Notes under the pieces: model-generated
Databases searched by the model: none
The model's input: only the letters and a program-made list of their open reading frames with translations
What the model was told of the DNA's origin: nothing
Made by a program: the position numbers and the translations under genes
DNA from: Botryllus schlosseri
Taxonomy: Eukaryota
Reading direction: 5' to 3'
DNA length: 64,000 nucleotides
NCBI GenBank assembly: GCA_051294905.1
Contig: CM119385.1
Span: 8,556,001 to 8,620,000 of the forward strand
Part shown: piece after piece, positions 48,901-63,800 of the stretch
Position numbering within the stretch: position 1 is the first letter of the stretch
How the letters are laid out: each line of letters starts with the position of its first letter

Positions 48901-51900
48901 TCAGCGAGTCCAAATCCCTCTTCCTATTCAACCAGCAAAGCCGCGTCCGACAGTCTTGCATCAACCTCTTCATCCGTCCCATGTTTTCCCACTTCATCAT
49001 GCTCGTGATTTTGGCTAATTGCGCGTGCATGATGTTAGCCGAGCCTCCGGCCTGGATCGAAACGCATCTGGAGTGAGTAATGGCATCGTTAATTTGCGTG
49101 CTTGTAACGGGCCGTATATACTGATGTACGATCTTTGCTCCGAACCTTGTAAGTCGTCAAAAGCCTAATATTAGATATTCTAATTACCTCCACGCAGAGA
49201 TTAAGGCTGTTCCTATTAAACTTTCAACAATAATTGCTACTCATTTCGAGCTTAAATACAGCCTGCGAGTTTACGGCGTGCGTGTAATACACACAGCGCT
49301 AAGTGCTTGCACGTTTTTAAAATTCCCTGCAAGACATGGCTTTTTATGCTTCAGTAGTAGTACAGCAGTATCCGTGGTATTGTGACATTCGCATGTTTCG
49401 TAAAATCGCTTTGTGATTCGCCAATGTTGTTTGTCTGCGTCTGGCTGGTTGAGAACAAATTAAAAAGGACAAGTGACGTAATAGGTGTTGATTGCTACGT
49501 TTCTTTTTGTGTACGTAATTTGTCAGAAGTGTGCTCTGCGTGCAAAGGAGATTCGTGCTACCGAGCGGCTCGTGATATATCATTGTGACGCGTGCTCATA
49601 ATATTAGTGGAAACGACAGATACGTTTCGACAGCTTGATACAGTACTTTTGCGAGTGTGCCGCATGCAATATTGATCGAATGCCATTCGTGTATTCACAA
49701 TACGCAAGCTCACACGAATCTTTATGGGAGAAAGTACTACTCTTTTTTTGACCTGTGAATCACGGGTAACAATGTCAACAACATGTAAGCAACAGGCATA
49801 TTGCATATTTTTATAATTTCATATTTTCTAGGCGTATACCTGTTCTGATGAATATAATTTTTACACAAGCGATTCGGTAATGGACAGAATTTAGTCGGTA
49901 GGTGTTGCCTGAAAAAGGACAATCCACTTGAACTCGATTCAATATACGGCGGAATAATTTGGTTTCCAACATATGTAATCTTCAATTGCACGTTTCCTGA
50001 TGAGGACAATCATTATCGGAATGCACGTGTTGTTGTTTTGATACTCATGGTGTTTTGATGGACTATACTATGGTAGTTTTACACCTTGTCGGTATTTCTT
50101 ATTGTGATTCCTGATCTGCCGACATGTATAACCTACACAAGAGACGCTCTGCTATGTTTTCTTGCATCAATTTTTAGTGGCATTTGTCATTTGCGTAAGT
50201 CGTGACGATGCACCCTGCAGTTTCGAGTATAACCACCCCGAGCGGATATTCTTGACCTATCCTAATATTTTGAAACTATTTACTTGAGTAGTTGTCAAAT
50301 TTTCATTTTATACTCGCACTTGGAATAATTTCGACATTTCCTGCAAATTTCTTGCCATGTGTAATTTCGTAGAAATCTACGTTGCTACTATTGCGTATAC
50401 TTGTGTGTAGGGTTGCATTTAAAACAAAATCTATTTAAAGCAAACATGTTTAAAACAAGGCTCTTGTTTAAAACATGTTTTTTTTTAAGCCATGACGTCA
50501 CGAATTTTCAACTGTGACGTCATGGTGGATTGGCTTTGACAATTGAAAATATAGGGCAAATACAGCTCATATGACGAAATACCTACCTACTATAGCTGTT
50601 TCATCGACAGTTTTGAAGGTTCCAACCATCCCATATCGTAAACGTCTGCTATATCGGGTGGTAATGGTCCGTAGGCTCCTACAACAGTATTTACACAATT
50701 ATGGCATAATTATACAACTTAAAAAAACTCATTTTTATTAAAAAGGGCTTCAATTTAAATGTAAACCTATTACTTGTGTACCAAAAATGACTACCTCTGA
50801 GCATACTATCCGGAAGCTATTCGCTAGTTTGGATAAGTCTTCCTTCAACGCGGTCACAGAATATACCTTGTAAGGCAGATTGCGTCATCGCCATAATCAC
50901 TGCTTGTGACCCAAGAAGTACTTTCGACGTCTTTACTCAAAATGATGCGACGACGCAAGCGCGACGTTAAACTGTGACATTTCGTCGTTGGTGAAGCCTC
51001 GCCAGACTAGTGCTAACAACTGGATTTTCAAGATGCGTAACTAGAACTGGAAACTGCAACTAATTACCTTTAAAGATGCGCAACTAAATAACGAAAGAAC
51101 CTTACTAGTTTTAATTCCGAGGCAACTCCTTCATTTTAATTTTATCGGAATTGCATCGGTTACTGGAGATCGAATAATCGAATAATCGTTTCAAAAGGAC
51201 GGGGTTTCGACCAGATAACCCACCCTCTGGCTAGAACACTGTTCGTACTGATGGCTCTGGGCCATAATCGGGTGCATTAACATCATAAAACAGAGTACCG
51301 GCATCACGATTCATACGAAATAGCGACACTTGTTTTGTAGTTGTTCGGAAACTAATTTTTGCGTAACTAGAACTACTCAATTTAAAGTTTTGCGACTAGA
51401 ATTTAAGCTAGAACTACTACAAAACCAGTAGTTAGATGATGGTAAACTAAAATAACTAGATTGGCTGTTTGGGCAAGTTTGAACCGCGCGCCTTTCGTTT
51501 TTAGATATGTTTTCACCGCGATCTACTGTTTCGAGGCGGCCGTGAAGATTGTCGGGCGCGGGTTCGTCCTGCATCGCTTCGCGTACCTGAGAGATCCCTG
51601 GAACTGGCTGGACTTCCTTGTTATCTTATTCGCGTGAGTGCCTTTATCTCGTTGAGGCGGGTAATTTGCAGTTAGGAGCGGATAGAAATAGTTCTCATTC
51701 AAGTATAGATAGGGGAAAAGGAAAGACTTGGAGTAGTTTTTCAATCAAACTCAGACCTTGGTCTCTAGAAAACGGGGCTCTGAAACATTTTCACTGCGGG
51801 CACCTTCAAGTTTGTGGGTGGTTACGTACACCACCAAAATTTCAGAAGCCGATGGCCAAAGTAAGAAGACAGGTATTCCCTTCGCCGCCCAATCCTGATT

Positions 51901-54900
51901 CAGGGTATCTGACATTTTAAAAGCTACCCGATGTTTAAAAAAGGGTCTCCACTTTGTTGTTTGTGATCCTATCTCGATGTTGTCTATTTCGTGTCCTAAA
52001 ACGCTACCATGGTGACTAAAAAAGGTCATCGGTCATCAAACAAGCTAAATAGTGGCTAGATGAGGTATGCAATTCCACCCACGACGTCATTGCGAAGGAG
52101 TAATGTGGTTTCGCAGTTGATAATGCGTTTCAACATTGCCGTTTCACGGACCCAAAAGAAGTTCGGCTCTGCGAGACGTGCAAATAAGAGTCATGTATGT
52201 ATTAGACCTCCTTATATAGTTGGTGATGCAATATTATAGCATCAGGTAGCATCAGACAGCATGAACAATGGCCTTTACACCAGACCTAACCTGATGAGAA
52301 ATAGATAAACTGTTTTGCTGCACTGTTCCTCAGCAAAAGTAGGATTACCTCCCAAGGGTATAAACGCGGGAGCGAGGTGTTGCGTATGCGTTCCGAAACA
52401 TCCAAGTCGAAGTAGAGTGCCGGTGACTGTTGACAGTGGTCAGGTGCGATAGCATCGGGTGGATTGGAAATATTATGAATTATACATAATCCACTTGAAC
52501 CTGTGCTTTCAGTAAACACAAGTTTCCTGCTTGACGCGCTGGAAGCCGTAATGCATTAGCAGTGAGGTCGCGTTGTCCTTTTTGAGTGGGCGAAATTTAA
52601 TCGCTCGTAAAGATGGCTTAATCCTATCATATGGAAACTCATGCTACTTGCCATTCAATTGTTGATTATGTGTATCGCTGAGCGTAGAACGTCCGAAGTC
52701 CTTTACGTCTTTGTGACTGTTTCCTTTCGGCGGGTACACGCTGAACTGTCTTTTCCGCGATATGGATTGGTGTATGAAGTGGACAGTGATATTAGTCATT
52801 GCGACATCGTGGTGACGCGATAATTTCAGGCCGATTTCCATAAACGATAGCCCTGTGTCGTAAATGGCAATGTAGATTGTACACGATAACCGATTTATTG
52901 ATGAATATTTTAGCTTCTGCAACAACGACATAAAAACGCAAGTCCGCACAATAAAAAAGACACTCCACGTCGCAAGTGTCATAGGTGTCAACATAAAGCA
53001 AGTTCTGGTTTTAGTAGGTGCTAAGCAGGTAAATAGTTGATCAGATCTGATAAGTCTGGTATAGTAATGCCCATTAGGATAGTTACAAAAAAGTATTTCC
53101 AAATCTTTTCCGCTATTCGATGCGAAATTAATAAAAACTTTGCACACCAAATTTGCTCAATTTTAACTGGTAGATGTGAAGCTGCAGGAGTTGAAAAAAT
53201 TATAATTTTTTTCAAATTTGACTGTTAACCTCATGAAATTGTCAAGTTGTCTGAAAAAACGATGGTAAAAATTTTTGCTCACTTCCAACTGGGAGAAGCG
53301 AAGCTATTGCAGTTGAAAATTTTGGATCCGCAAAAATAACATTGACGGTGGGTAATCCCAGAATTAACTATGAAAAACTCAAATAACTTCGCTTCTACGG
53401 GTAGTAATTGATACCCATCATTTTTGAAATTTTCCAAATTTTGGACAATCCTACTGACTATATTTTTGAAGATTGCACCAATTTGTTGTGTCGTGAGTCA
53501 TTCTGCGTTAGTCGGTAAGGTGCGCCCTGCTATTTCGAAATTTGCCAACTTCAATGTACTATTAGAAGTATGCGGCGTCCCTACCTAATTTACTTTTTGC
53601 AAATACGTATTCTTGAGTAGCCTGCATTTAAAGTCATAGTTTTCTACTTCCAAGCCGTTTTTGAAATGTCTTGGAAATTTCTGCGATTACTGCTTTGGCG
53701 GACTCTGCTGTCGACCGATTTTGGTAAGAATGTATTGTTTACATCAGTTTTCTCAGAAATTCCTCCTGATCGATAGGAACTCTTTTTAAAATATCGGTCG
53801 ATGTTTCTACGGTCTTTGATACCGATATTCCCCCTATTTCCAGAATTGGTACTGAGATTATGAAAGCAACCATGCCGGACGACAGCGACCTGGGCCAGTT
53901 CTCCGTGCTGCGGGCCTTCCGAGTACTGCGCGCTTTAAAGACCATGTCCGTCGTGCCAGGTGCGTCACGGTTTTGTCGCCGACCTCTAGATGTAATTAGC
54001 GTGTCTTTGTCCGTTACGTGCCTAACTAGCAATATGGCAGTCCTGTCTTCAAGGGTGTCTTCAAAGATTCTCACCAGCCTAAAAACAAAGGCTTTTTCGT
54101 TGCCGAATTAGTAGCGAAGAGTCCGCTACATTCAATTACGCAACGCGCGCGAACAAAGGCTTGTCTGGCATCGCTCAATTAGCGCTTCTATCCGCGCTGC
54201 GTACGCGAACTGAATCCGAAACCGCCAACATGATATGATAATTAATCGGACGTTGGCTAATGCGATCGGCTCGGAATGCTAATTACAGCTGACCGCGTTT
54301 TTTTCGGAGAAGATTTCAGGCCTTTTCTATTGACTCGGCGATGTGGCCGCTATATGGTGGGTCTCGCGATGCGTAATTACGTACGGTAGGACAATGCGTG
54401 ACTTTGGTGTCGTGTAAGCGGCCGTTTGCGTAATGCTTTAGAAGTCGTTGCGTTGGGGTGTGGAACGACTTTCGCTGATTGGTGTAGGAGTGGGGATGCG
54501 TCGGTGCGACGCTGCCGCCAATTGTTTTGAGGATACGAGCCGAATTTGTAAGTCCTGGCCATTTATGGCCATTTACTATTTATTCTTTGTAGATCTAGAG
54601 CCATAACATTTCCTTTTAGTTTGGCACAAATGACTACTTTAGGAAAATTTGCAAGCATTCGGATTGCGAGCATATTCACCTCCAATCCGAATTTTCACCC
54701 GGCTTTCACACCTATGCGTCTATACACTTTTCTCGATAATTATAAACAATCCAGAGAATTGCAATACTTATGCAATAAACACATACTCTATGAATATGGC
54801 TTATATCGTGTCCGTCATAGGCTGCTGTGACCTGTTTAGACTAATTCACTTACTAGTATTACATCATGAGTCTTAATTTTACGCGACCGCAATACATTGT

Positions 54901-57900
54901 AGATACCTCTGGTAAGCGCTACACGGGGGAATGTTCTTTCTGAATTGAAATCACATTGAGAATCATTACAACTCACTACTGAATATTCCTGTGGTATTTT
55001 CTTCCGCACAATTAGTCCATCTCGCCATCACGAGTGGTTACGAAGTGTGTTTTGGGTCTACAGCGTGGTTGGAAGTTGTGAAGTCGAAATGACAATGAAG
55101 TATGGTATCGGCCATAAATACTGCCTGTGACGGGAATACCAAATTTTCATTCAGACAGTCGCATCGGCCTCAATTATGCAAAACCTTATCCTATTTCTAA
55201 TGAGTACTTCTTCGGGGTGGTCACACTGAAATCGGACGCATAAAATTGATATTCACCCGCGCCGTAGAGCCATTTGCGAGGCCGATGATTGAAGCGTACC
55301 TGAATCGGCGTCTCCGCTCAAATATTTGAATTGTGCATATTTTGACGCCTATAACGCGCCATTTCACGCCGGACGATGTGAAATTTAATAACGCCAACTT
55401 TCCCACCTGGAATATATGAGTATAGCCCTGCTAGGCGAAAAATATATTATTTAACTAAGGTGTCTCCGATCTCTCATCGCCCGCCGCTCGCTACGAAAAA
55501 AACAAGGCTCTGGTGTCGACTGAACTTATTTGCGAAAATGTTGTAGTCACTATTTAAATGCAACTCACTTGTATCGTCTCAAACGACTGTGACGTCGCCT
55601 TGGTGACGGACGTTGAGGGTGCTAAGTGGCCGACACTTTTTGTTGTTTTTACGGACACTATGGATGGCACGTCTCGCTCGGCGGTGGACCGTGTCCCGTG
55701 CGGTTAATGAATATTTTGATATCAACCGTGCAGTTGCTTCTTTGATGCTGGTGCTGTTCGGTTCCGTGTCTATTAGCGTAAAGGGAGGTCGGATTTTCGA
55801 CGGGAAAGAATGCTATGGAATACTATCGGCGTCTCTCCAGCAATTAAAATAGTCATCGTTGCTACTCGGGTACAAAAGCAGACGTAACGTTGTAAATTTC
55901 TACTTAGTACAAGTAGAAATAGCGTCTTCCAAGTTAATAAAGAGCAAATATTCTGAACGGACTGTTGCCTAAACAAAATGTTAAGTAGAAGTAGTTTATT
56001 TACAATCATAAGCAGTTGAGTAAGTAGTCCAAGTAGGCGAGTAGAAGTACACGTTACTGACCACCTCTGGGCTCCGGTCTATGCCCTGTTTGTCCTGACG
56101 CATTTCGGGTGGTCACTATCTCCACTCGATATTTGTTAGGTTGAAAACAAATGCGTTAATGGATCAATTGTAAATGATCACGATCAACACGACGCATTAG
56201 CAGTAAGTGAGAAATTGTGCTGAAACCCGACACCCAAGATATGCTGATAGAGGTTGCGTCAACCTACTTGAGGGAATTTGGTTTTAAACTGCCTTTATTT
56301 GAACAGCCATTGAAGTCAAAGTATTTCGTATTTGCACAATTTAGTCAAGGAAAAGTGACCCCGTAAGGACAGATTCGTAATAGCGAGATCGCCAACGGAA
56401 TCCGGCCAACGGAGCGGCATGTCATGAGTCGGACTTTTGTCGGTCATCAATTGCTTTAGCATTAAATTTGTTTAATGTACCTTCGTCACAGTTTCTGCCA
56501 TACTATAGTAGAGTAGTAGTAGGATAATGCGATATCTAATTAATGAGATTATTCATAAAAAGTTACTCAACTCGTAACTCCTATCTTGTCTGTCGCTTGC
56601 GTAGGCGCGCTACAAGCTTCATACATTTCGATCACATGCTAGGATTAATATATTGAACAATTATATAATTCGTATAATCCTTAATGCGTCTGCTCGGTTA
56701 TACCGGTCAACGGGTGCATCTAAATTGCAATCTTTTTATTCACAAGTATCCTATGGTCTCTCTCTATATATAAATTTCCAGTGTGTAACCGATGCGATGA
56801 AAATACAATTTAAATGGTTCTCGCATATTAATTCATCAATATTGATGCCGGTGCCGCTCACCGATTCTATATACGTACCGGAGTCGGTCTCGTAGCTCGG
56901 GATCAAGTTTTCCGTCTCGTTCACGGTCGCGGAGTTTTAATTATTCATCAATTCACGCAAAGTTGGCATCCCCGTCTTGATAAGAATTCTATATCGGAGC
57001 GCAAATCAAATTTTGCCCGGATACTGGAAATAGAGCCTCGTCACGGTATAATTTCGGCATTACGGCGTCTAGTATAGTCTCAAGTGTGGATTGTGTAGTC
57101 GTGTGGAGTATACGGTCATTTAGGTTGTGCATGTGATGCTCTGCTGTATAGACCCGGATCAGAACTTGATGTGGTGGACTGTTTCAGTGACTAGGGGAGC
57201 ATTGGGGTTGTTCGTTCCGGTCTTTGCCTTTCATTATGGCTCACTTGAATCGAGCGTTGAACTTTACACGAAACTAACAGTAAATTTAAGCTATCGCAGA
57301 GAGTCACGAAATGTTCCCCATAAACACGCAGTTTCATCATGATTTGGACAGGAGATATAGTTCGTACATTTCAACTGTGCGCTATTCCGCCCCAAGTAGA
57401 GTAGTTAGTGAGATTGTCAGGAGTTTTACCACGTGCCGCGATGAACAACGACTGGTGAGGGGTGAACAATGAGCATGCGTCACTTCATAACCCTAAAATG
57501 GGTCTCATGCGTAATCGTCGCATGCTCACGAATCCGTTAGAGAACCGGTAACAAACTGCTCCCCGTTACCAGCACCGTACACAAAGTCATAACCCATATT
57601 CCTTCTGCCAGGTCTCCGCGGGATCGTCAAAGCCCTGCTGCGGTCCATACGAGCCCTGCAAGATGCCGTGGCTCTTACCATGTTCTGCGTGTCCGTCTTC
57701 GCACTCATCGGCTACCAGCTCTTCCACGGCACCCTGCGTCACAAATGCGTGCTCAAACCAGGCTACATCGCCGACGGTCCGGACGCGTTGTACCTAGCCG
57801 ATTGGGACGCGTCCAACACCACCTACCTAGCGGGCCCCGCCTTATTTCAATTCGACCCGGGCCGGACTACGCCGCCTTCCGTCGAATGGCATAATTTCAC

Positions 57901-60803
57901 CAAAAATCGCGAAATTGACAAATATCTGCCCATGTCGCTAACGCCGCTTTTTTCATATCACATTAACGAGACTTGCTACGATTGCTACCCCGAATGGACC
58001 CCTTTTTATAACACTACGTGGACCGAACACGACACTAATTTAACGAAAAATATGTTCGCCACAATCCACCACCAGCTATTGAACGCTTCGTCCAGTTTTC
58101 GCCGTGATACGCAGTCAAAGTCGGCTTCGTGCGTAGATATTCTAAATGAATGCCTAGTGTCTAGCGATATGCGACTGTACACAAACAGCAGTAATTCCAG
58201 CTTAGTGCAGGAGATGCTACGATCCCAAGCCGACCCATACGGCCATTTTTACGAGACCGGTTGTGAATTTCTAAGCGGTAATTCCACGCGGAATTTAACA
58301 TCGAGCGATTCGATATGCAATGTCTCAGTCACTGCGTACGCGGGAAATATTACCTGCATGTATGAAATCCTAGGCTTCAACCGGACTAACGACACGCTTT
58401 TGAGGTTTCATGAATGCTTCGACAACAACACGTGGATTAAAACACTCGCTTTCGGCAAGGAACGCGTGCAACGGTATGAAACACGTAAAACGGCGATATT
58501 TTACCGCTTGCATCCTGTCCCCGGCGGTTCTGCCGGAATGAGGGTGGACGAAGCGTTTCGCGGCGGAAAGTCGAACTTGATATTTGAGGAGTATGAGCGC
58601 GAGGCTATGACTAAGGCGGAACTGACGGATTGGAATTGCACTGACGAGCATTACCTCATGAGAGACGTGGACCGGGGGATGTATTTTTATCCGAACTCGT
58701 CGAACAGACCCACCGACGAGCCGCGCTACTGCAAGCTGGCGGACACGTATGTATTACTCTGTTTATAGCAGCAGTGGTTCCCAACCTTTTTCCACCCGCG
58801 TACCATTTCGAGGTTTTACGCAGTGCTCGCGTACCACCTACATAAGATACGCACGCCGAAGGCGGTAAAAAATGTTTCTACCGTGTTGAGTTGCTGAATA
58901 CAGGGAAACAGAAGATAGCTGCCCAACGTGCCCATTTTAAGGCGCAGTATATGATTTCTGTAGTGGATCCATTTGGAATTCTTATGGTCAAATGTATCCA
59001 AACGAAATTTGATTAGGTAAGAATCCCAATGCTTTACGACTATAGATTTCTTCCCCGTAGGTCGTCATTGGCAGGGTTGCCCCTACCCACGACGACGACC
59101 TTACCACGAAGACGAAGGCTTCAAAAAACTAAAAATCAACCCCACCTGAACTAATAACTCCCTTCGGTCCAAAAAACAGAATCCACTCCTGTGCCACCTG
59201 GAAGACCTTCGCGTACCACTACGCGCACCACAGGTTGGGAACCACTGGTTTATAGATCATCATGTCTTTCGTGCTCACTGCTCAGCCTAGCATCGGTCGG
59301 ACTAAAAATGGTTTTATGTTGAAACGGGTTTAAGGTTATGAATGACGGGTTTATTTTTTTCTGTTTTTGTCGATATCCTGGTTAACTATACAAATCAAGT
59401 TAATTGTTCGGGATGGAAATAAAATATCGTCGATGATTGAACGGACGCGGCGAGTTACCATGGCCCGATAGGAGGATGTATCGCGTTCGATTTGCCTAAG
59501 TGTACATTTGACACTTTTCACTGTATTGCTGCGATTGGGTACTTGACCCGTCGAATCATTTTCCAGGTTCACATTTACACATGAATACTAGAGATACTAA
59601 TTTCAATGAATATAGACATATGTGATAATTTAATAATCAGCATTCAACTTCTCCTGCAGCCAATTTGCTCTTGTTATCATTAAGACATTCGTTGACTATA
59701 TCAAATTTCCTATCTAATGAATTATATATCTTGAAATATCCCTGATATTACAGATTTTTAGCGATGCCGATATCTGGCAATATGGGTGTGCCGATGTATC
59801 ATTCTCGCATATAGAGATAGATAACAATTTCCAATAATATAAATAATACACTTTCGTTCGAACTACGAGCAATATTTCTGTATATGAATTCACTAGAATG
59901 TGCGGGTAGCGCGAAGGCACTCATAGTTCCCATTCGCCGGACCGGAATATTTACATTGCTGACATTCATGCATCGTGGGAACGTCCGGGGTTGTTGCGGC
60001 GTTGTGACGCGACACGCATCGGCCGACTCATATAGTTTGCACGAATTTTTAAATCGCATCCCCGGCGAACCGTGACGTTGTTGTCATATTTAGTATAGAA
60101 AGCGTCTCGGACATGGAGCGTTGTTTATAACGCTTTGCCGTTCGTTCGATTGTTGGAAAACACAAGGGCTGTACTGTTGTCATGTTATGCGGTGACATAT
60201 AGCGTGTAGGTTGCGTCCTATTGACAAACTGTTGCATTTTACGCACTGATAATAATAATTGGGACTGGGCACCACGATTCGAGTATCAATTGTAGCCGTT
60301 CGTCGAGTCGATTATCGAGAGTTGATTTTTCAGGTAACGAAAATAGTCGTCATCCTGCTACTAGTTACTCCGTCAACTAAAACAAAACATAATTTTTATA
60401 CTACGTTCCCGCTGGCGAGCAGTAATACGTCGTTGGTCGTACGTCAGCATCCGAAACCAGCTGTGCAAGGTTACGCATGTTCGACATTTCTCGGAGTTAG
60501 TGATCAACCCTCGGCATTGTCATAAAGCGCTATTCAAATTATTTTTGATGACGTGTACCTAGCGTTCTTTTACTTGAGATTTGAATCATTCATTCGCACA
60601 TTAGACGATTTACGAATCTGTATTTCGAATGTCTAAACACCACCTTGATCTCATCCAGCTCTGTTTGCGGCGCTTCCCACGAATGTCTGGAAGCCGGCGG
60701 CAACCCGGACTCCGGTTATACCAACTTCGATTCCTTCTTCTGGGCGTTTCTCACCTCGTTCCGCCTGATTAACCAAGATGCCTGGAGTCGCCTCTATTAT
60801 TTG
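21601..60803 (+). CDS. Voltage-gated sodium channel alpha subunit (Nav/SCN family), 5' part: N-terminus to DI pore loop; multi-exon gene continuing beyond the window
   Basis: Seven phase-compatible exons with canonical AG/GT ends join into one ORF containing Nav hallmarks: [17 protein letters not shown]|[78 protein letters not shown]. The specific orthologue cannot be assigned from the window, so no gene symbol is given. Confidence 0.97.
25000..25262 (-). mobile_element. Related SINE subfamily, degenerate; 3' boundary approximate
   Basis: Minus strand has A-box TAGCGTAGCGG, B-box-like GATCGAATCC and the shared core GGAGGTTATTCTAGGCTCCTC...AAAAAGCCCAG; the 3' part differs from the other copies. 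Confidence 0.6.
25780..26812. mobile_element. Decayed MITE (AAGTAGAAGTA repeats, GTTACTGACC end) hosting the 25919-26500 insertion
   Basis: The right end gtagaagtacttcgttactgacc matches the end of the copy at 55850-56069; the left boundary is approximate. Confidence 0.45.
25919..26500. mobile_element. hAT MITE (TAGGGTTGCATTTAAAAC termini)
   Basis: Long terminal repeats TAGGGTTGCATTTAAAACAAA / TTTGTTTTAAATGCAACCA; perfect 8-bp TSD ggtgggat. Confidence 0.9.
26823..27224. mobile_element. Degenerate relative of the 17361-18305 MITE
   Basis: cagcgttggg start, tgacttgact / gagtca arrays, ttgacaccaac end. Confidence 0.55.
28881..29101. repeat. Hairpin or small palindromic MITE, about 90-bp arms and 40-nt loop
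   Basis: tattcatattgaaa...gagaattg.aaaga..attgta matches the reverse complement of the right arm at about 90% by eye. Confidence 0.85.
30596..30713 (+). mobile_element. Short dispersed repeat (TAGGGTTGGAATTAGCAAT family), copy A
   Basis: Aligns with 34651-34804 (same strand) and 31854-32001 (opposite strand); lacks one internal block. Confidence 0.8.
30821..30980. mobile_element. Small decayed MITE with caagtc/gagtca arrays
   Basis: Repeated tcaagtc/cgagtca motifs ending in aaaaccctg. Confidence 0.45.
31277..31494 (+). CDS. Nav N-terminal domain exon ([12 protein letters not shown]...[10 protein letters not shown]...[11 protein letters not shown])
   Basis: Acceptor cattttcag, donor AAG|gtacgg. 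LKEGKKLP and [11 protein letters not shown] match Nav LEAGKxLP and LEDLDPYYxNK. The phase 0 end joins TYIVLNK, the same intron position as in vertebrate SCN genes. Confidence 0.92.
31854..32001 (-). mobile_element. TAGGGTTGGAATTAGCAAT family, copy B (inverted)
   Basis: Its reverse complement aligns along the full length of copy C. Confidence 0.8.
32612..32894. mobile_element. Palindromic MITE with long imperfect terminal repeats
   Basis: Left arm gcatgtaaaagttttgag...tgcatagagttg...gttgaaatgc pairs with right arm gcatttcaact...caactctatgca...ctcaaaaagtttacttgc. Confidence 0.75.
33273..34451. mobile_element. hAT (Buster-like) MITE with a nested MITE at 33453-33756
   Basis: Terminal repeats CAGGGGTGGGCAAAC / GTTTGCCCACCCCTG; TSD acctagac / acctatac (7/8, central TA); gcggcccgc subterminal repeats. 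The inner element has caatggttcccaaac / gtttgagaaccactg ends. Confidence 0.9.
34651..34804 (+). mobile_element. TAGGGTTGGAATTAGCAAT family, copy C
   Basis: Aligns with copies A and B. Confidence 0.8.
37255..37629. repeat. Imperfect palindrome, about 150-bp arms and 75-nt spacer (foldback MITE-like)
   Basis: ttgccaccac.gcagggt...ggcactt.ctggt.caaaa...tattccaat...acaccaat..tatggagatatat.ccagg pairs with the reverse complement of 37478-37629. Confidence 0.8.
39627..40015. mobile_element. hAT (Buster-like) MITE
   Basis: Terminal repeats CAGTGGTTCCCAAC / GTTGGGAACCACTG; TSD gtcaaaat / atctaaat (6/8). Confidence 0.85.
41432..43069. mobile_element. 1638-bp foldback-type element with hAT-like ends, about 780-bp inverted arms and 80-bp spacer
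   Basis: TAGGGTTGTCCATAATTTGG termini; perfect 8-bp TSD ttcaccat (41424-41431 and 43070-43077); the arms align from the termini to about 42213 / 42291. Confidence 0.95.
44014..44515. mobile_element. hAT (Buster-like) MITE
   Basis: Terminal repeats CAGTGGTTATCA / TGATAACCACTG; TSD ggttagag / ggttggag (7/8). Confidence 0.85.
46268..46651 (+). CDS. Alternative first coding exon giving a different 128-aa Nav N-terminus ([15 protein letters not shown]...RIRSFFDTK)
   Basis: ATG at 46268, 128 open codons with GC-rich composition like the other exons, donor AAG|gtacac at 46652 in phase 0, matching the exon 48861 acceptor. No Nav homology within the exon. Confidence 0.75.
48861..49072 (+). CDS. Nav exon: end of N-terminal domain and DI-S1 ([23 protein letters not shown]...[27 protein letters not shown])
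   Basis: Acceptor tttttgtttcag, donor GA|gtgagt, 212 nt, phase 0 to 2. Clear similarity to Nav TFIVLNKGKxIFRFSAT...ILTNCVFM. Confidence 0.97.
50408..50750. mobile_element. Truncated copy of the 25919-26500 MITE
   Basis: The left terminal repeat TAGGGTTGCATTTAAAACAAAA and internal sequence (catgacgtca...gtgacgtca.ggtggatt...gacaattgaaaatataggg) are colinear; the right repeat is missing. Confidence 0.8.
51505..51633 (+). CDS. Nav exon: DI-S2/S3 ([43 protein letters not shown])
   Basis: Acceptor tttcgtttttag, donor GC|gtgagt, phase 2 to 2. Its 129 nt equal the length of the vertebrate SCN exon. Not in the ORF track because it has no start codon. Confidence 0.98.
53844..53959 (+). CDS. Nav exon: DI S3-S4 linker and S4 voltage sensor ([39 protein letters not shown])
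   Basis: Acceptor cctatttccag, donor CCAG|gtgcgt, 116 nt, phase 2 to 1. The R..R..R..K gating-charge pattern is intact. Confidence 0.97.
55850..56069. mobile_element. Partial MITE end (GTAGAAGTA repeats, CGTTACTGACCACCTCTG terminus)
   Basis: Terminus shared with the element ending at 26812. Confidence 0.5.
57612..58746 (+). CDS. Nav exon: DI S4-S5 linker, S5 and a very long extracellular S5-pore loop
   Basis: Acceptor ttccttctgccag, donor AC|gtatgt at 58747, 1135 nt open in frame, phase 1 to 2. Starts [12 protein letters not shown]...[18 protein letters not shown] and ends PRYCKLADT. Confidence 0.96.
58772..59247. mobile_element. hAT (Buster-like) MITE just downstream of the giant exon donor
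   Basis: Terminal repeats CAGTGGTTCCCAACCT / AGGTTGGGAACCACTG; TSD gtttatag at 58761-58768 and 59248-59255, with an extra cag at 58769-58771. Confidence 0.9.
60659..60803 (+). CDS. Nav exon: DI pore loop ([48 protein letters not shown])
   Basis: Acceptor tcatccag, donor TTG|gtgaga, 145 nt, phase 2 to 0. Colinear with Nav [47 protein letters not shown]. Confidence 0.97.
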
Positions 60804-63800
60804 GTGAGATATCTATGGTCGTTCCGCCATACCTGTTATTGACTCGATTTCACCTCGACCTCTCAGTATGTGAATGTTTTCTTAGACTTGACATGTCTCT
60901 GCGACCCCAAATTATGTTGGGAAAGTAATGGACTGTTGACCCGGTGTGCATACTGTTATTTCCGTAGCGGTGGTGCGTACTGATCACCAAATTGGTCGAT
61001 TGCATATAATTGACCAATATTGGGTCAGTAAAGATGGCTTACCATTGGGTATGATATGTGACTTCATTAGAAAAGACTGGAATAGCCATTCTCGGTTATA
61101 GGTCAGGTCATTCTAAAGATGAAAGGTTAGCCGATTTCATTAGGTAAAATGGCTGAATGCGTCCGAATCTGTAACCTGTGTCTTCATGACTTTGTGCTCT
61201 CGGCAGTCGCTGTCGGTCACTAGTTAGAGTCGATTGTGTGATTTTTTTGTTTCTTCAATAATACAGTGCACCCCCTGTGCTGATATATACTGATATATAC
61301 GTACAGCGTGTTGTGTGCTATCTAAAAAAAGCCCCGATTGGATTTTCCAATGAAATACACCAACACGTACGATCGCACAGTATTGTTCGCTACATTTTGC
61401 AATATTGACGTTGGAGGTCACCGGATTTTCATTTGAAGTAACAGATTATCCTTGAAAAATACAGTATTTACATTGTTAATCCCGATTTGAGGTGTTCTAA
61501 CGGGGCTCTGATGGATAACTCAGCGGGTAAATCATGTGTTGATGGAAATGGCATGATTTTGTGCCTGACTGATTCGAATACGCTAAGAAACGGGCTGGCT
61601 AGACTCGATATCTTTTCGTTAAATGTACGCGCGGAATCTGAGGTATTGTCGCGTTGCATGCTAACCTATCTCATGCGTGCCCTCTGCCCTATTATCTTCG
61701 CTTTTATTGAGATACGTATTAGAATTGGGATTTAAGTCTAGGGTGAATGCAATTTCGCAGTTCGTTTGAGCGGTCACTTATGGGGTAACTGTGTGGGCTT
61801 ATTGTGATTGACGGCAACACGTACGCGTTCTGACAATCTCCGTTATGATGTCTAATATCATGACATGCGCCAATTCACTGCTTCTACGAGTATGTTTGAG
61901 AGTGAAATTTACAGATATACTGTAATACCCATACCCTCAAATATTCGAAATGCACGTATCGCCGTGAAATGTGCGTCTCTAAAATTTTATGAAATCCGCG
62001 GCGCCATTAGTTGGTCCATTTGTGGTATGCAGATCCAGTATAGTTATTCAAGTTTTCTACGCAAAAACGATATTTTTAGCCTGCTTGCAACAGTGTTGAT
62101 TGAGCCATCGTACTTCTGTCAAGTGCCCTGCTGACAATTAGACGTTCCGAGCAATTGACGCCGCAGGTTGTCCGGTACTTTTCAAGTGATAAATGAATAT
62201 CTCCGTACGACGGCGATAATGAAGTCCTTGGCTGTTATGAAATTTTAATGCCGAATTGCTTTGCGAGACTGTCAAAAGTTGTATACTTGTATACAGCCCG
62301 ATTTGTGTGACGCATACAGCAATACGTGAAACTACCGCGAGTTTTTCGAGGGATGGGTAAACTCAGGCCCCGGTAGCAATCCTTAACACTCTAAAAATAA
62401 ATATGTGATAATACATTCGGCAATGTGAAAGCTGTAACAGTATATGAATGGGGTTATCGGGGGCTCCACATTATATACATTTGCTTATAAATGGGCTTCT
62501 ACCTAACTAGGGCCGGGTTATGTGTAGTTAGCAATCGTAATCATTCGAGTGGGATAGAGACCTAGAGAGGGATGATTTTTTTCGAGAAATATAGATCGGT
62601 GATATCTTCCCACCATGGGACCCTCGAAACCTCGATTGATCGCACCACGACACCCAAAACATACTGTACACAAGGCTAGGAATATTCATGGAACGGCATT
62701 TCTGCGAAGCATAGTAGCCGTCACGCAGCATGGTTACAGAGCAAGGTCAAAAAAATGCAAATTCATTTCATGTCATTAATTTTCTTCGCTGCGTGGAAAA
62801 GGCACATGCTGAATAACATACATATGACGTCATAATCTGTTATACTCGAATACTTCTTAAACCTGTGGTTACGAATTCGGGTTCTGCTAAAATTTGTGGG
62901 ACGCATTATTCGATTTCTGATAAGTAAATGATACTAAGAATGAGCGGGAATATGTTGCTAAATGTACCGATATGTAGCAGAAAATACAATGCTCTTGCAT
63001 GTTGTGGTCCGTTCCTATATTAAGAATCTATCTTGAACCGCGACATCCGAGTTTCTCTGAGTTGCTAATACAAGCGGCGTTGTTTCACATCTCGAATCGA
63101 TCAGACCAAATTATCAGTCAATCTTATTTGTTCGTTGCGTGACTTGCGTCAGTCAGCCGTTTCTGCATTATAACGCGCCAGATTTGGTTACATATCAACG
63201 ATGTTATCCGAAATACCAGATAACAATCAGTTTCTTGCGGTCATTCATGCGTAACCGACATCAACTTGGATACATCAAGCTTTTCCGCCTTGCCTATATT
63301 GTAGGAATGCACCTAACGTGACATTATGAGTACACTCCGCACTGCCCACTCCACACTTGCGTGAAACCAAGCCCTTGTTTAAGGTTTTGGTTGGCGTTAT
63401 TTACATTGCTATTGCGCAGCAAGTCCTAAGAACAGATTGTACTATAGCAGGACTCCACAGCCTCTTTTACTCCGTGGCTTCCTTTGGAAATTTTGAAAAT
63501 CAATGGTCACACTTTGAATACATGAAGAATCGTAAATTTTGATTAAAAAAACAACAACAATAAACATGATAGTACATTAATTAGATATTACGTATGCAGT
63601 TAATATGATGTTCGAGCTTGTTTTTGTTCTGACTATGTCTTACTTGATTGTTTGGTGTATGGTAGACGGAAGAAAGTACCGTAAACAAAAGATCAAGAAG
63701 TAGCATATTGCGGTACTAGTATTTTTATCATAGTTTAAATTATTTCTTTTGTTATAGTCATATAGTGGAGATGATATAATTTTCAAATTCTCTTATGGCC

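Follow-up and report, generated by a model that had tools for sequence, protein, structure and literature searches.

A giant exon gives a divergent tunicate Nav1 channel a long, sequon-rich extracellular loop in domain I

Introduction

Auxiliary proteins dock at the extracellular pore dome of four-domain channels, near the turret of domain I: the immunoglobulin (Ig) beta1 to beta4 subunits of Nav channels, the alpha2-delta subunit of Cav channels (VWA and Cache domains), and, for NALCN, FAM155A with its cysteine-rich domain. The subject of this article is a channel in which the turret itself is enlarged. The gene lies in a 64,000-nucleotide stretch of the Botryllus schlosseri genome (GenBank assembly GCA_051294905.1, contig CM119385.1, positions 8,556,001 to 8,620,000 of the forward strand), hereafter called the window and numbered from its first letter, where a single exon encodes the S5 helix of domain I and the whole loop between S5 and the pore (the L5I loop) of a Nav-type channel. 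Loci outside the window are given in our numbering of the same genome (G000).

The core cysteines of the canonical turret were described by Stephens (2015; PMC4436565), and across all eukaryotic four-domain channels the L5I loop measures 60 to 105 residues (Fux 2018; PMC6259924), and surveys of these channels present the domain I turret as a pore dome loop of that size; regulation from outside the cell is normally the task of separate subunits. The turrets of canonical Nav, Cav, and NALCN channels occupy the same position between S5 and the P1 pore helix of domain I, share the four core cysteines with the channel described here, and are likewise enriched in glycosylation (PMC4436565, PMC6259924), but they have neither the extra cysteines nor the separate predicted globular domain of the present loop. 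The auxiliary proteins are likewise glycosylated, disulfide-bearing extracellular modules at or near this turret (disulfides and glycans being predicted in our case); they differ in being separate proteins, whereas the module here is a covalent part of the alpha subunit, and the Ig, VWA, Cache, and FAM155 cysteine-rich domains show no sequence or fold similarity to it. Lineage-specific turrets with extra cysteines that alter pore behavior are also known from the L5II and L6IV loops of invertebrate Cav3 channels (PMC7382465, PMC9694082); those loops, found in domains II and IV, span tens of residues and undergo alternative splicing, whereas the insert considered below is constitutive, about 275 residues long, part of domain I, and predicted to form a domain of its own.

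Ascidians are of particular interest in this regard. No Nav beta genes are present in their genomes, the Ciona channel CiNav1a is unaffected by human beta1 or by TipE, and whether ascidians possess an auxiliary subunit of their own has been called an open question (PMC1971062, PMC8192821). Kawai et al. (2021) named two uncharacterized Ciona paralogues, CiNav1b and CiNav1c, which have weak conservation of the inactivation latch and no ankyrin motif (PMC8192821). Neither "extracellular loop" nor "glycosyl" occurs in the text of that paper, and no expanded domain I loop is mentioned in it (PMC8192821). It is the only work in the literature searched to name such paralogues, and that literature yielded no description of the expanded loop, so that the proviso of an earlier, sequence-only reading of this DNA (the first-pass annotation), that orthologues with such a loop might already have been characterized, was not borne out there.

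A giant exon kept whole in spliced RNA

The exon of interest is 1,135 nucleotides long, with an AG acceptor at 57610-57611 and a GTATGT donor from 58747 (Table 1). Its residues are numbered here from the codon at 57614, in whose frame the DNA is open from 57593 to 58765, over 391 codons; in the other two frames and in the flanking introns, stop codons run at about 5%. The 377-residue translation comprises the end of a Nav-type S4-S5 segment, the S5 helix, and then the whole L5I loop. The two cysteines that frame the loop, Cys45 (of HKC) and Cys373 (of RYC), are 328 positions apart and enclose 327 residues, among which are nine further cysteines (including those of CYDC and CVDILNEC). The loop also holds 17 N-x-S/T sequons, against 3.9 +/- 1.7 after shuffling; a count as high as 17 did not occur in 20,000 shuffles. 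Searches for tandem or internal repeats in the loop found none; its composition (T, 9.5%; S, 8.3%; P, 4.9%; normal hydrophobic content) is not that of a mucin-like or low-complexity stalk built from Ser/Thr/Pro-rich tandem repeats. On all of these points, namely, the cysteine spacing and count, the exon length, the sequon count, the absence of simple repeats, and a frame that stays open where intronic frames close, the first-pass annotation had been correct.

Where is the extra sequence placed? From the S5 cysteine to the NPxxGYT anchor of the pore helix there are 348 residues here and 74 in a gecko Nav1.5 fragment, whereas the C-x8-C-x5-C spacing before the pore helix is identical in the two and all four core cysteines are present. 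Because the difference in length arises with this spacing unchanged, an insert of about 275 residues sits between core cysteines 1 and 2, and it takes the loop well outside the published range.

The transcript evidence comes from four sequencing runs, whose label as RNA is a guess, aligned to window positions 55050-60950. A 2,581-nucleotide contig of run X1 spans 57606-58746 without a break, splices from 58746 to 60659 (GT..AG) into the exon of the pore helix, and continues on both sides. A contig of run X2, from a separate study, has the same 58746-to-60659 junction, and its loose end before 57606 maps to 53924-53953, the end of the S4 exon, which gives an upstream junction of 53959|57612. 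Since these contigs contain GT..AG spliced junctions, they derive from processed transcripts. Neither contig has a junction inside the giant exon, and depth is 11 to 49 over the exon versus 0 to 8 over the flanking intron. The exon is therefore genuine and is kept whole in spliced RNA, joined to both of its neighbors; the removal of most of it as an internal intron, a possibility that the first-pass annotation had raised against itself, is not what the contigs of the two studies show.

The same observations bear on the most skeptical reading of the locus, in which the exon would be absent from the mature protein, whether as an intron that was retained, an error of assembly, or an exon of a pseudogene. 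The sole point in its favor is that the two raw RNA runs examined have no reads on the exon. Set against this are the 391-codon open frame, the spliced contigs from two studies with both neighbors joined and no internal junction, and the recurrence of the single-exon arrangement of the loop in other species whose genomes were assembled independently. Taken together, the transcripts and the comparisons essentially exclude an artifact, and we consider one very improbable.

As a separate observation, the intron that follows the giant exon contains, at 58770-59380, a repeat or transposon-like element over which RNA-contig depth rises to about 578. The element is also marked by numerous loose ends and by small rearrangements within it, and all raw RNA reads on the stretch map to it.

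A predicted compact core that matches no known domain

Only the first part of the exon resembles anything known. Pfam Ion_trans matches exon residues 1 to 88 (E value, 3.5e-6), and matches to the sequences of solved structures (Nav1.3, Nav1.8, Nav1.5, and others) cover mostly residues 1 to 49 and at most residues 1 to 81 (Nav1.5). A Pfam scan of the exon and of 12 orthologue cores matched S5 alone, with no Ig family, and a profile of the core found nothing among solved-structure sequences at an E value of 1 or below. Searched alone against 1.84 billion representative sequences, the loop retrieved three proteins, all of them orthologues of this exon; no paralogous copy of the loop was found in its own genome, where it is single copy.

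Structure prediction with AlphaFold2 divides the loop in two. For the whole exon, the predicted local distance difference test score (pLDDT) is 62, with S5 and residues 130 to 346 well modeled; much of residues 37 to 130 scores between 29 and 53, and the first 85 or so residues of the loop are poorly modeled. The core of residues 130 to 346, predicted with 12 orthologues, reaches a mean pLDDT of 74.9 and a predicted template modeling (TM) score (pTM) of 0.75, and takes the form of a four-stranded antiparallel sheet with about six helices, a compact alpha/beta arrangement of about 215 residues. Fold searches with the whole-exon model were dominated by the S5 helix and uninformative, and they were repeated with the core alone. 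Foldseek then returned nothing below an E value of 0.2 among solved structures, AlphaFold DB clusters, and viral models; the best Z score in an exhaustive VIA-align search was 3.8, under the usual background for unmatched models; and the best TM score in the ESM Atlas was 0.38 or less. Weak but recurrent resemblances to the N domain of P-type ATPases and to a roadblock/PAS-like sandwich were dropped, their scores (Z, 2.5 to 3.8; TM, 0.3 to 0.38) being too low. A language-model feature search gave generic secreted-glycoprotein look-alikes only. An Ig-like V-type beta-sandwich is not what we find: the model is mixed alpha/beta, and neither Pfam nor the fold searches returned Ig. The predicted fold is thus unrecognized by sequence, profile, and structure search, as the first-pass annotation had said of the domain; with a model of intermediate confidence, this is no proof of a new fold.

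These searches also speak to a possible role as a receptor or adhesion module, in which the insert would bind a ligand, the matrix, or a partner cell and couple that binding to the localization or gating of the channel. The vertebrate beta subunits that use this site are competent for adhesion. A large, independently folding extracellular domain would suit such a role, and the odd number of additional cysteines (nine) would allow one of them to be free or to bond with another molecule. However, no similarity to Ig, lectin, VWA, EGF, or CRD binding domains was found, conservation of a surface motif is confined to the segment that adjoins the pore helix, and no partner is known. Because any known binding fold is absent, the idea of a sensor is left without support, and we regard a receptor or adhesion module as quite unlikely.

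Retention and divergence among orthologues

Word-indexed and profile searches of other assemblies yielded about 12 orthologous, exon-sized open frames (P0001 to P0013). In these exons, S5 is nearly invariant, and the core cysteines are separated by 250 to 383 residues containing 4 to 10 cysteines and 6 to 15 sequons. Identity to the window exon is 53% for the closest (49% for the loop alone) and 25 to 39% for the others. Of the 12 sequences, 10 share the three cysteines C124, C180, and C248, further conserved positions in the loop are W136, N256, R291, and W340, and S362, P366, E369, P370, Y372, and C373 are invariant in all 12. At the two loci with sufficient flanking sequence (L002 and L011), the long exon is followed by the same unusual DAW(S/G)RLYYL pore-helix signature, in a gene layout shared with the window. 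Sequon counts stay high across the orthologues while sequon positions shift.

Two of the orthologues, P0007 (locus L028, on a short contig of a metagenome in the European Nucleotide Archive) and P0009 (locus L029, on a TARA Oceans scaffold), form a distinct subgroup and are 66% identical. The source of P0009 is probably a pelagic tunicate, and planktonic tunicates are therefore likely to have the long loop too. In another assembly (ERZ25067590), separate contigs carry three haplotype-level copies of one orthologous exon (L024, L025, and L026) whose proteins are 97 to 98% identical; such copies fit a highly heterozygous or pooled (colonial) sample.

How has selection acted on the loop? The ratio of nonsynonymous to synonymous divergence (dN/dS) was estimated between species from two independent pairs, neither of which includes the closest orthologue, P0001. 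For the loop, dN is about 0.31 and dS is saturated (at least 1.5), so that dN/dS is about 0.2 or less; dN in S5 is 0 to 0.03. Within species, the corresponding polymorphism ratio (pN/pS) is 0.32 between the window and the RNA haplotype, from an incomplete list of 10 nonsynonymous and 9 synonymous differences, and 0.4 to 0.7 among the three haplotypes of another species. On these comparisons of sequence, the loop evolves fast and yet under purifying selection, and the insert, kept in about 12 orthologous exons, is unlikely to be neutral in related species, a point on which the first-pass annotation had staked its proposal.

Could the loop nonetheless be a largely neutral expansion, a growth that a hypervariable turret tolerates once its paralogue is no longer constrained, with the frame kept only since frameshifts would destroy the channel? 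The low identity among orthologues, the variation in length (250 to 383 residues), and the long, poorly modeled segments all fit, as does the clustering of amino acid polymorphisms in segments of low model confidence; the paralogue is, moreover, divergent overall, with a D/E/K/E filter and no IFM latch (see below). The between-species dN/dS and the conserved Cys, Trp, and Arg columns argue otherwise, as do the consistent prediction of the core fold, an enrichment in sequons that needs selection, and retention of the insert in about 12 lineages, including the planktonic one of the TARA metagenome. We therefore judge neutral expansion to be improbable.

A glycan shield is the rival to which we give the most weight, followed by the ligand or adhesion module, the weakly constrained expansion, and the artifact. 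In this alternative, the insert would be mainly a scaffold for a dense coat of N-glycans over the outer vestibule, directed in a filter-feeding animal against pore toxins, proteases, or microbes, with the fold being secondary. The number of loop asparagines in sequons is 4.4 times the chance expectation, orthologues keep their sequon counts high even as the positions move, the sequence evolves fast, and the feature search retrieves only generic secreted glycoproteins, all of which a shield would explain. A pure carrier of glycans would not, however, need the conserved Trp, Arg, and Cys residues or a confidently predicted core, and since the pore already lacks the main contacts for guanidinium toxins (A and S in domain I and N in domain IV), a shield is not needed against those. 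On balance, a glycan shield seems unlikely to be the main explanation.

The first-pass annotation had proposed a folded, glycosylated, disulfide-bonded domain. The enrichment in sequons, the three cysteines shared by 10 of 12 sequences, the pTM of the core, and the dN/dS of the loop support that proposal, with the correction that only residues 130 to 346 or so model compactly. The roles it offered for the domain (a substitute for beta subunits, a sensor, an adhesion module, or a glycan shield) are hypothetical.

A sodium channel of nonstandard kind

Exon matches to Ion_trans extend from C15:8607494 to 8665266, and homology mapping against two paralogues recovered S1 to S6 of all four repeats and an IQ-like region at the C terminus; the exons of the four repeats lie between window position 48945 and C15:8,667,825. 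All four S4 segments keep their arrays of positive charge, and each repeat has its S5-P-S6 unit, as in a four-domain voltage-gated channel (four times six transmembrane segments) of the Nav branch. The pore filter reads D (NQDAW), E (CGEWIE), K (TFKGW), and E (TSEGW) from domain I to domain IV, with canonical splice sites; the domain IV filter (I-S-T-S-E-G-W) stands behind a clean AG acceptor. The filter is thus not the DEKA of Nav1, and because the lysine of domain III is kept, the channel is Nav1-like and not Nav2 (DEEA). The outer ring has S/E/L/N in place of E/E/M/D, and the residues of domains I and IV that make the main contacts with guanidinium toxins are neutral. In the III-IV latch (G-V-F-L-T-D-E-Q), VFL replaces IFM, with the central phenylalanine kept and its flanks changed. 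The filter and latch sites lie at window positions 60771-60791 and at G000:C15:8648792-8648809, 8657064-8657078, 8664954-8664968, and 8657903-8657926.

The assignment of the loop to domain I of a Nav channel, proposed in the first-pass annotation, is upheld by the four repeats, the S4 arrays, and the pore residues, with the qualification that the filter (D/E/K/E), the latch (VFL), and the neutralized outer ring are not those of a standard Nav1 channel. Judged from these residues, ion selectivity and fast inactivation may both differ from the standard. The channel is a divergent tunicate Nav1 paralogue of the kind named Nav1b and Nav1c in Ciona, to which it is likened by published description. 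CiNav1b and CiNav1c are likewise Nav1-clade ascidian genes found alongside a canonical Nav1a and a Nav2, and the CiNav1b filter (D/E/T/E) shares the glutamate of domain IV, differing in domain III, where the present channel has lysine (PMC8192821). An ankyrin-motif pattern scan found no match in this gene and none in the canonical paralogue on C13 of the same genome, which makes the scan itself untrustworthy.

A candidate extracellular cap

In total, we put at about 0.9 the probability that the exon is real and constitutively included and that it gives a divergent tunicate Nav1 paralogue an extracellular, cysteine-bearing insert with a folded core, selected for glycosylation. Several observations weigh against the fuller reading that follows and should be set out together. 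The raw RNA runs X24 and X21 have 0 reads over the giant exon, X21 having no reads at all; the RNA support consists of assembled contigs from runs guessed to be RNA and is compatible with minor isoforms that skip parts of the exon. The gene model outside the window was built from homology and splice motifs only, and the model of the core is of middling confidence. The loop evolves fast (24 to 50% identity between orthologues), pN/pS is just mildly below 1 on small counts, and much of the loop may be weakly constrained.

Within this framework, we posit that a lineage-specific insert of about 275 residues, placed between core cysteines 1 and 2 of the domain I turret, would consist of a variable, glycosylated stalk followed by the compact alpha/beta domain of about 215 residues, stabilized by its conserved cysteines and bearing many N-glycans. 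The topology of the channel leaves the domain no place other than the extracellular side of the domain I turret, and its predicted position, like its putative disulfides and glycans, would be on or beside the dome that covers the pore. By analogy with the auxiliary subunits, we suggest that the insert could be a cis-fused extracellular cap, an auxiliary-like module standing in for a separate subunit, a tentative proposal to which we give an even chance at most. Such a cap, presumably nonenzymatic, might help the channel to fold and to reach the cell surface, and it might influence both entry into the outer vestibule and the electrostatics there. We further speculate that a previously unseen fold serves as a covalently fused extracellular regulator, either an integral auxiliary subunit or a cap that senses ligands or contacts, and tunes gating, permeation, or localization, a tunicate invention in animals without Nav beta; this stronger claim is doubtful.

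Whatever its function, the insert is unusual for the channel family, new to the literature searched, and an orphan domain. The Nav1-clade channel in question belongs to the sister group of vertebrates and carries at the turret its own predicted glycosylated, globular module of about 215 residues, one that is shared across tunicate lineages and has no match among known domains. If the module modulates the channel, it would offer a natural and genetically simple system for studying how a cap governs folding, delivery to the surface, the electrostatics of the vestibule, and access by toxins. The whole arrangement is a single polypeptide that could be expressed in oocytes, for which CiNav1a is a precedent, and, on the same condition, it would bear on the question of auxiliary subunits native to ascidians. 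Paralogues of the Nav1b and Nav1c type are hereby flagged as more than degenerate copies.

Features of the locus and other channel genes

The features in and around the giant exon are collected in Table 1.

Table 1. Exons and loop segments of the domain I region, in window coordinates
Feature	Position	Strand	Basis
Domain I S3-S4 linker and S4 exon, four gating charges	53844..53959	+	3' end from RNA; 5' end inferred from AG only
Giant exon: domain I S5 and expanded L5I loop to second core Cys	57612..58746	+	Open frame, splice sites, spliced RNA contigs
S4-S5 end and S5 helix to first core Cys (HKC)	57612..57748	+	Sole part with a Pfam or solved-structure match
Variable N-terminal part of loop, about 85 residues, 4 sequons, CYDC	57749..58000	+	Gaps and length variation in orthologue alignment; low pLDDT
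Insert core, exon residues 130-346, predicted alpha/beta domain	58001..58651	+	AlphaFold2 on 12 orthologues; conserved columns W136, C180, C248, N256, R291, W340
C-terminal loop motif F/Y-Y-x-x-S-x-x-R-P-x-x-E-P-x-Y-C with second core Cys, then donor	58652..58746	+	Invariant columns in 12 sequences
Next exon, 145 nucleotides: core Cys 3 and 4 (C-x5-C), pore helix P1, domain I filter Asp	60659..60803	+	RNA splice junction, translation

The same genome holds a canonical Nav1 gene at G000:C13:5777241-5798141, with filter D/E/-/A (domain III not read) and latch DIFMTEEQ; a candidate exon for its loop, about 90 residues long, lies at 5780846-5781142. This gene has an alanine after TTSAGW (TTSAG|WA) of the ascidian type, a peculiarity described for TuNa1 and CiNav1a (PMC8192821) that also speaks for a tunicate host. 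A Nav2 gene lies at G000:C10:22348066-22376934 (filter D-E-E). A supposed tandem Nav paralogue about 160 kilobases upstream of the window gene was rejected, the channel gene there being NALCN-like: it is a four-domain gene at G000:C15:8437761-8451805 on the plus strand (L021 to L023), recognized by the S4-like segment ...RIIRLVKLSPTLEGFVYK.

Also upstream is an intronless CFAP221 gene of 884 codons (L020:3694-6348, equal to G000:C15:8535694-8538348, plus strand), whose product is 58% identical to that of Styela clava, 46% to that of Ciona intestinalis, 44% to that of Clavelina, and 40% to that of Branchiostoma. An amphioxus origin, suspected in part from the high polymorphism, was rejected on this result; mitochondrial COX1, sought as a second marker of the lineage, is absent from the assembly. 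Because CFAP221 matches Styela best among named relatives, the genome is placed on this evidence among the tunicates, closest to the stolidobranch ascidians.

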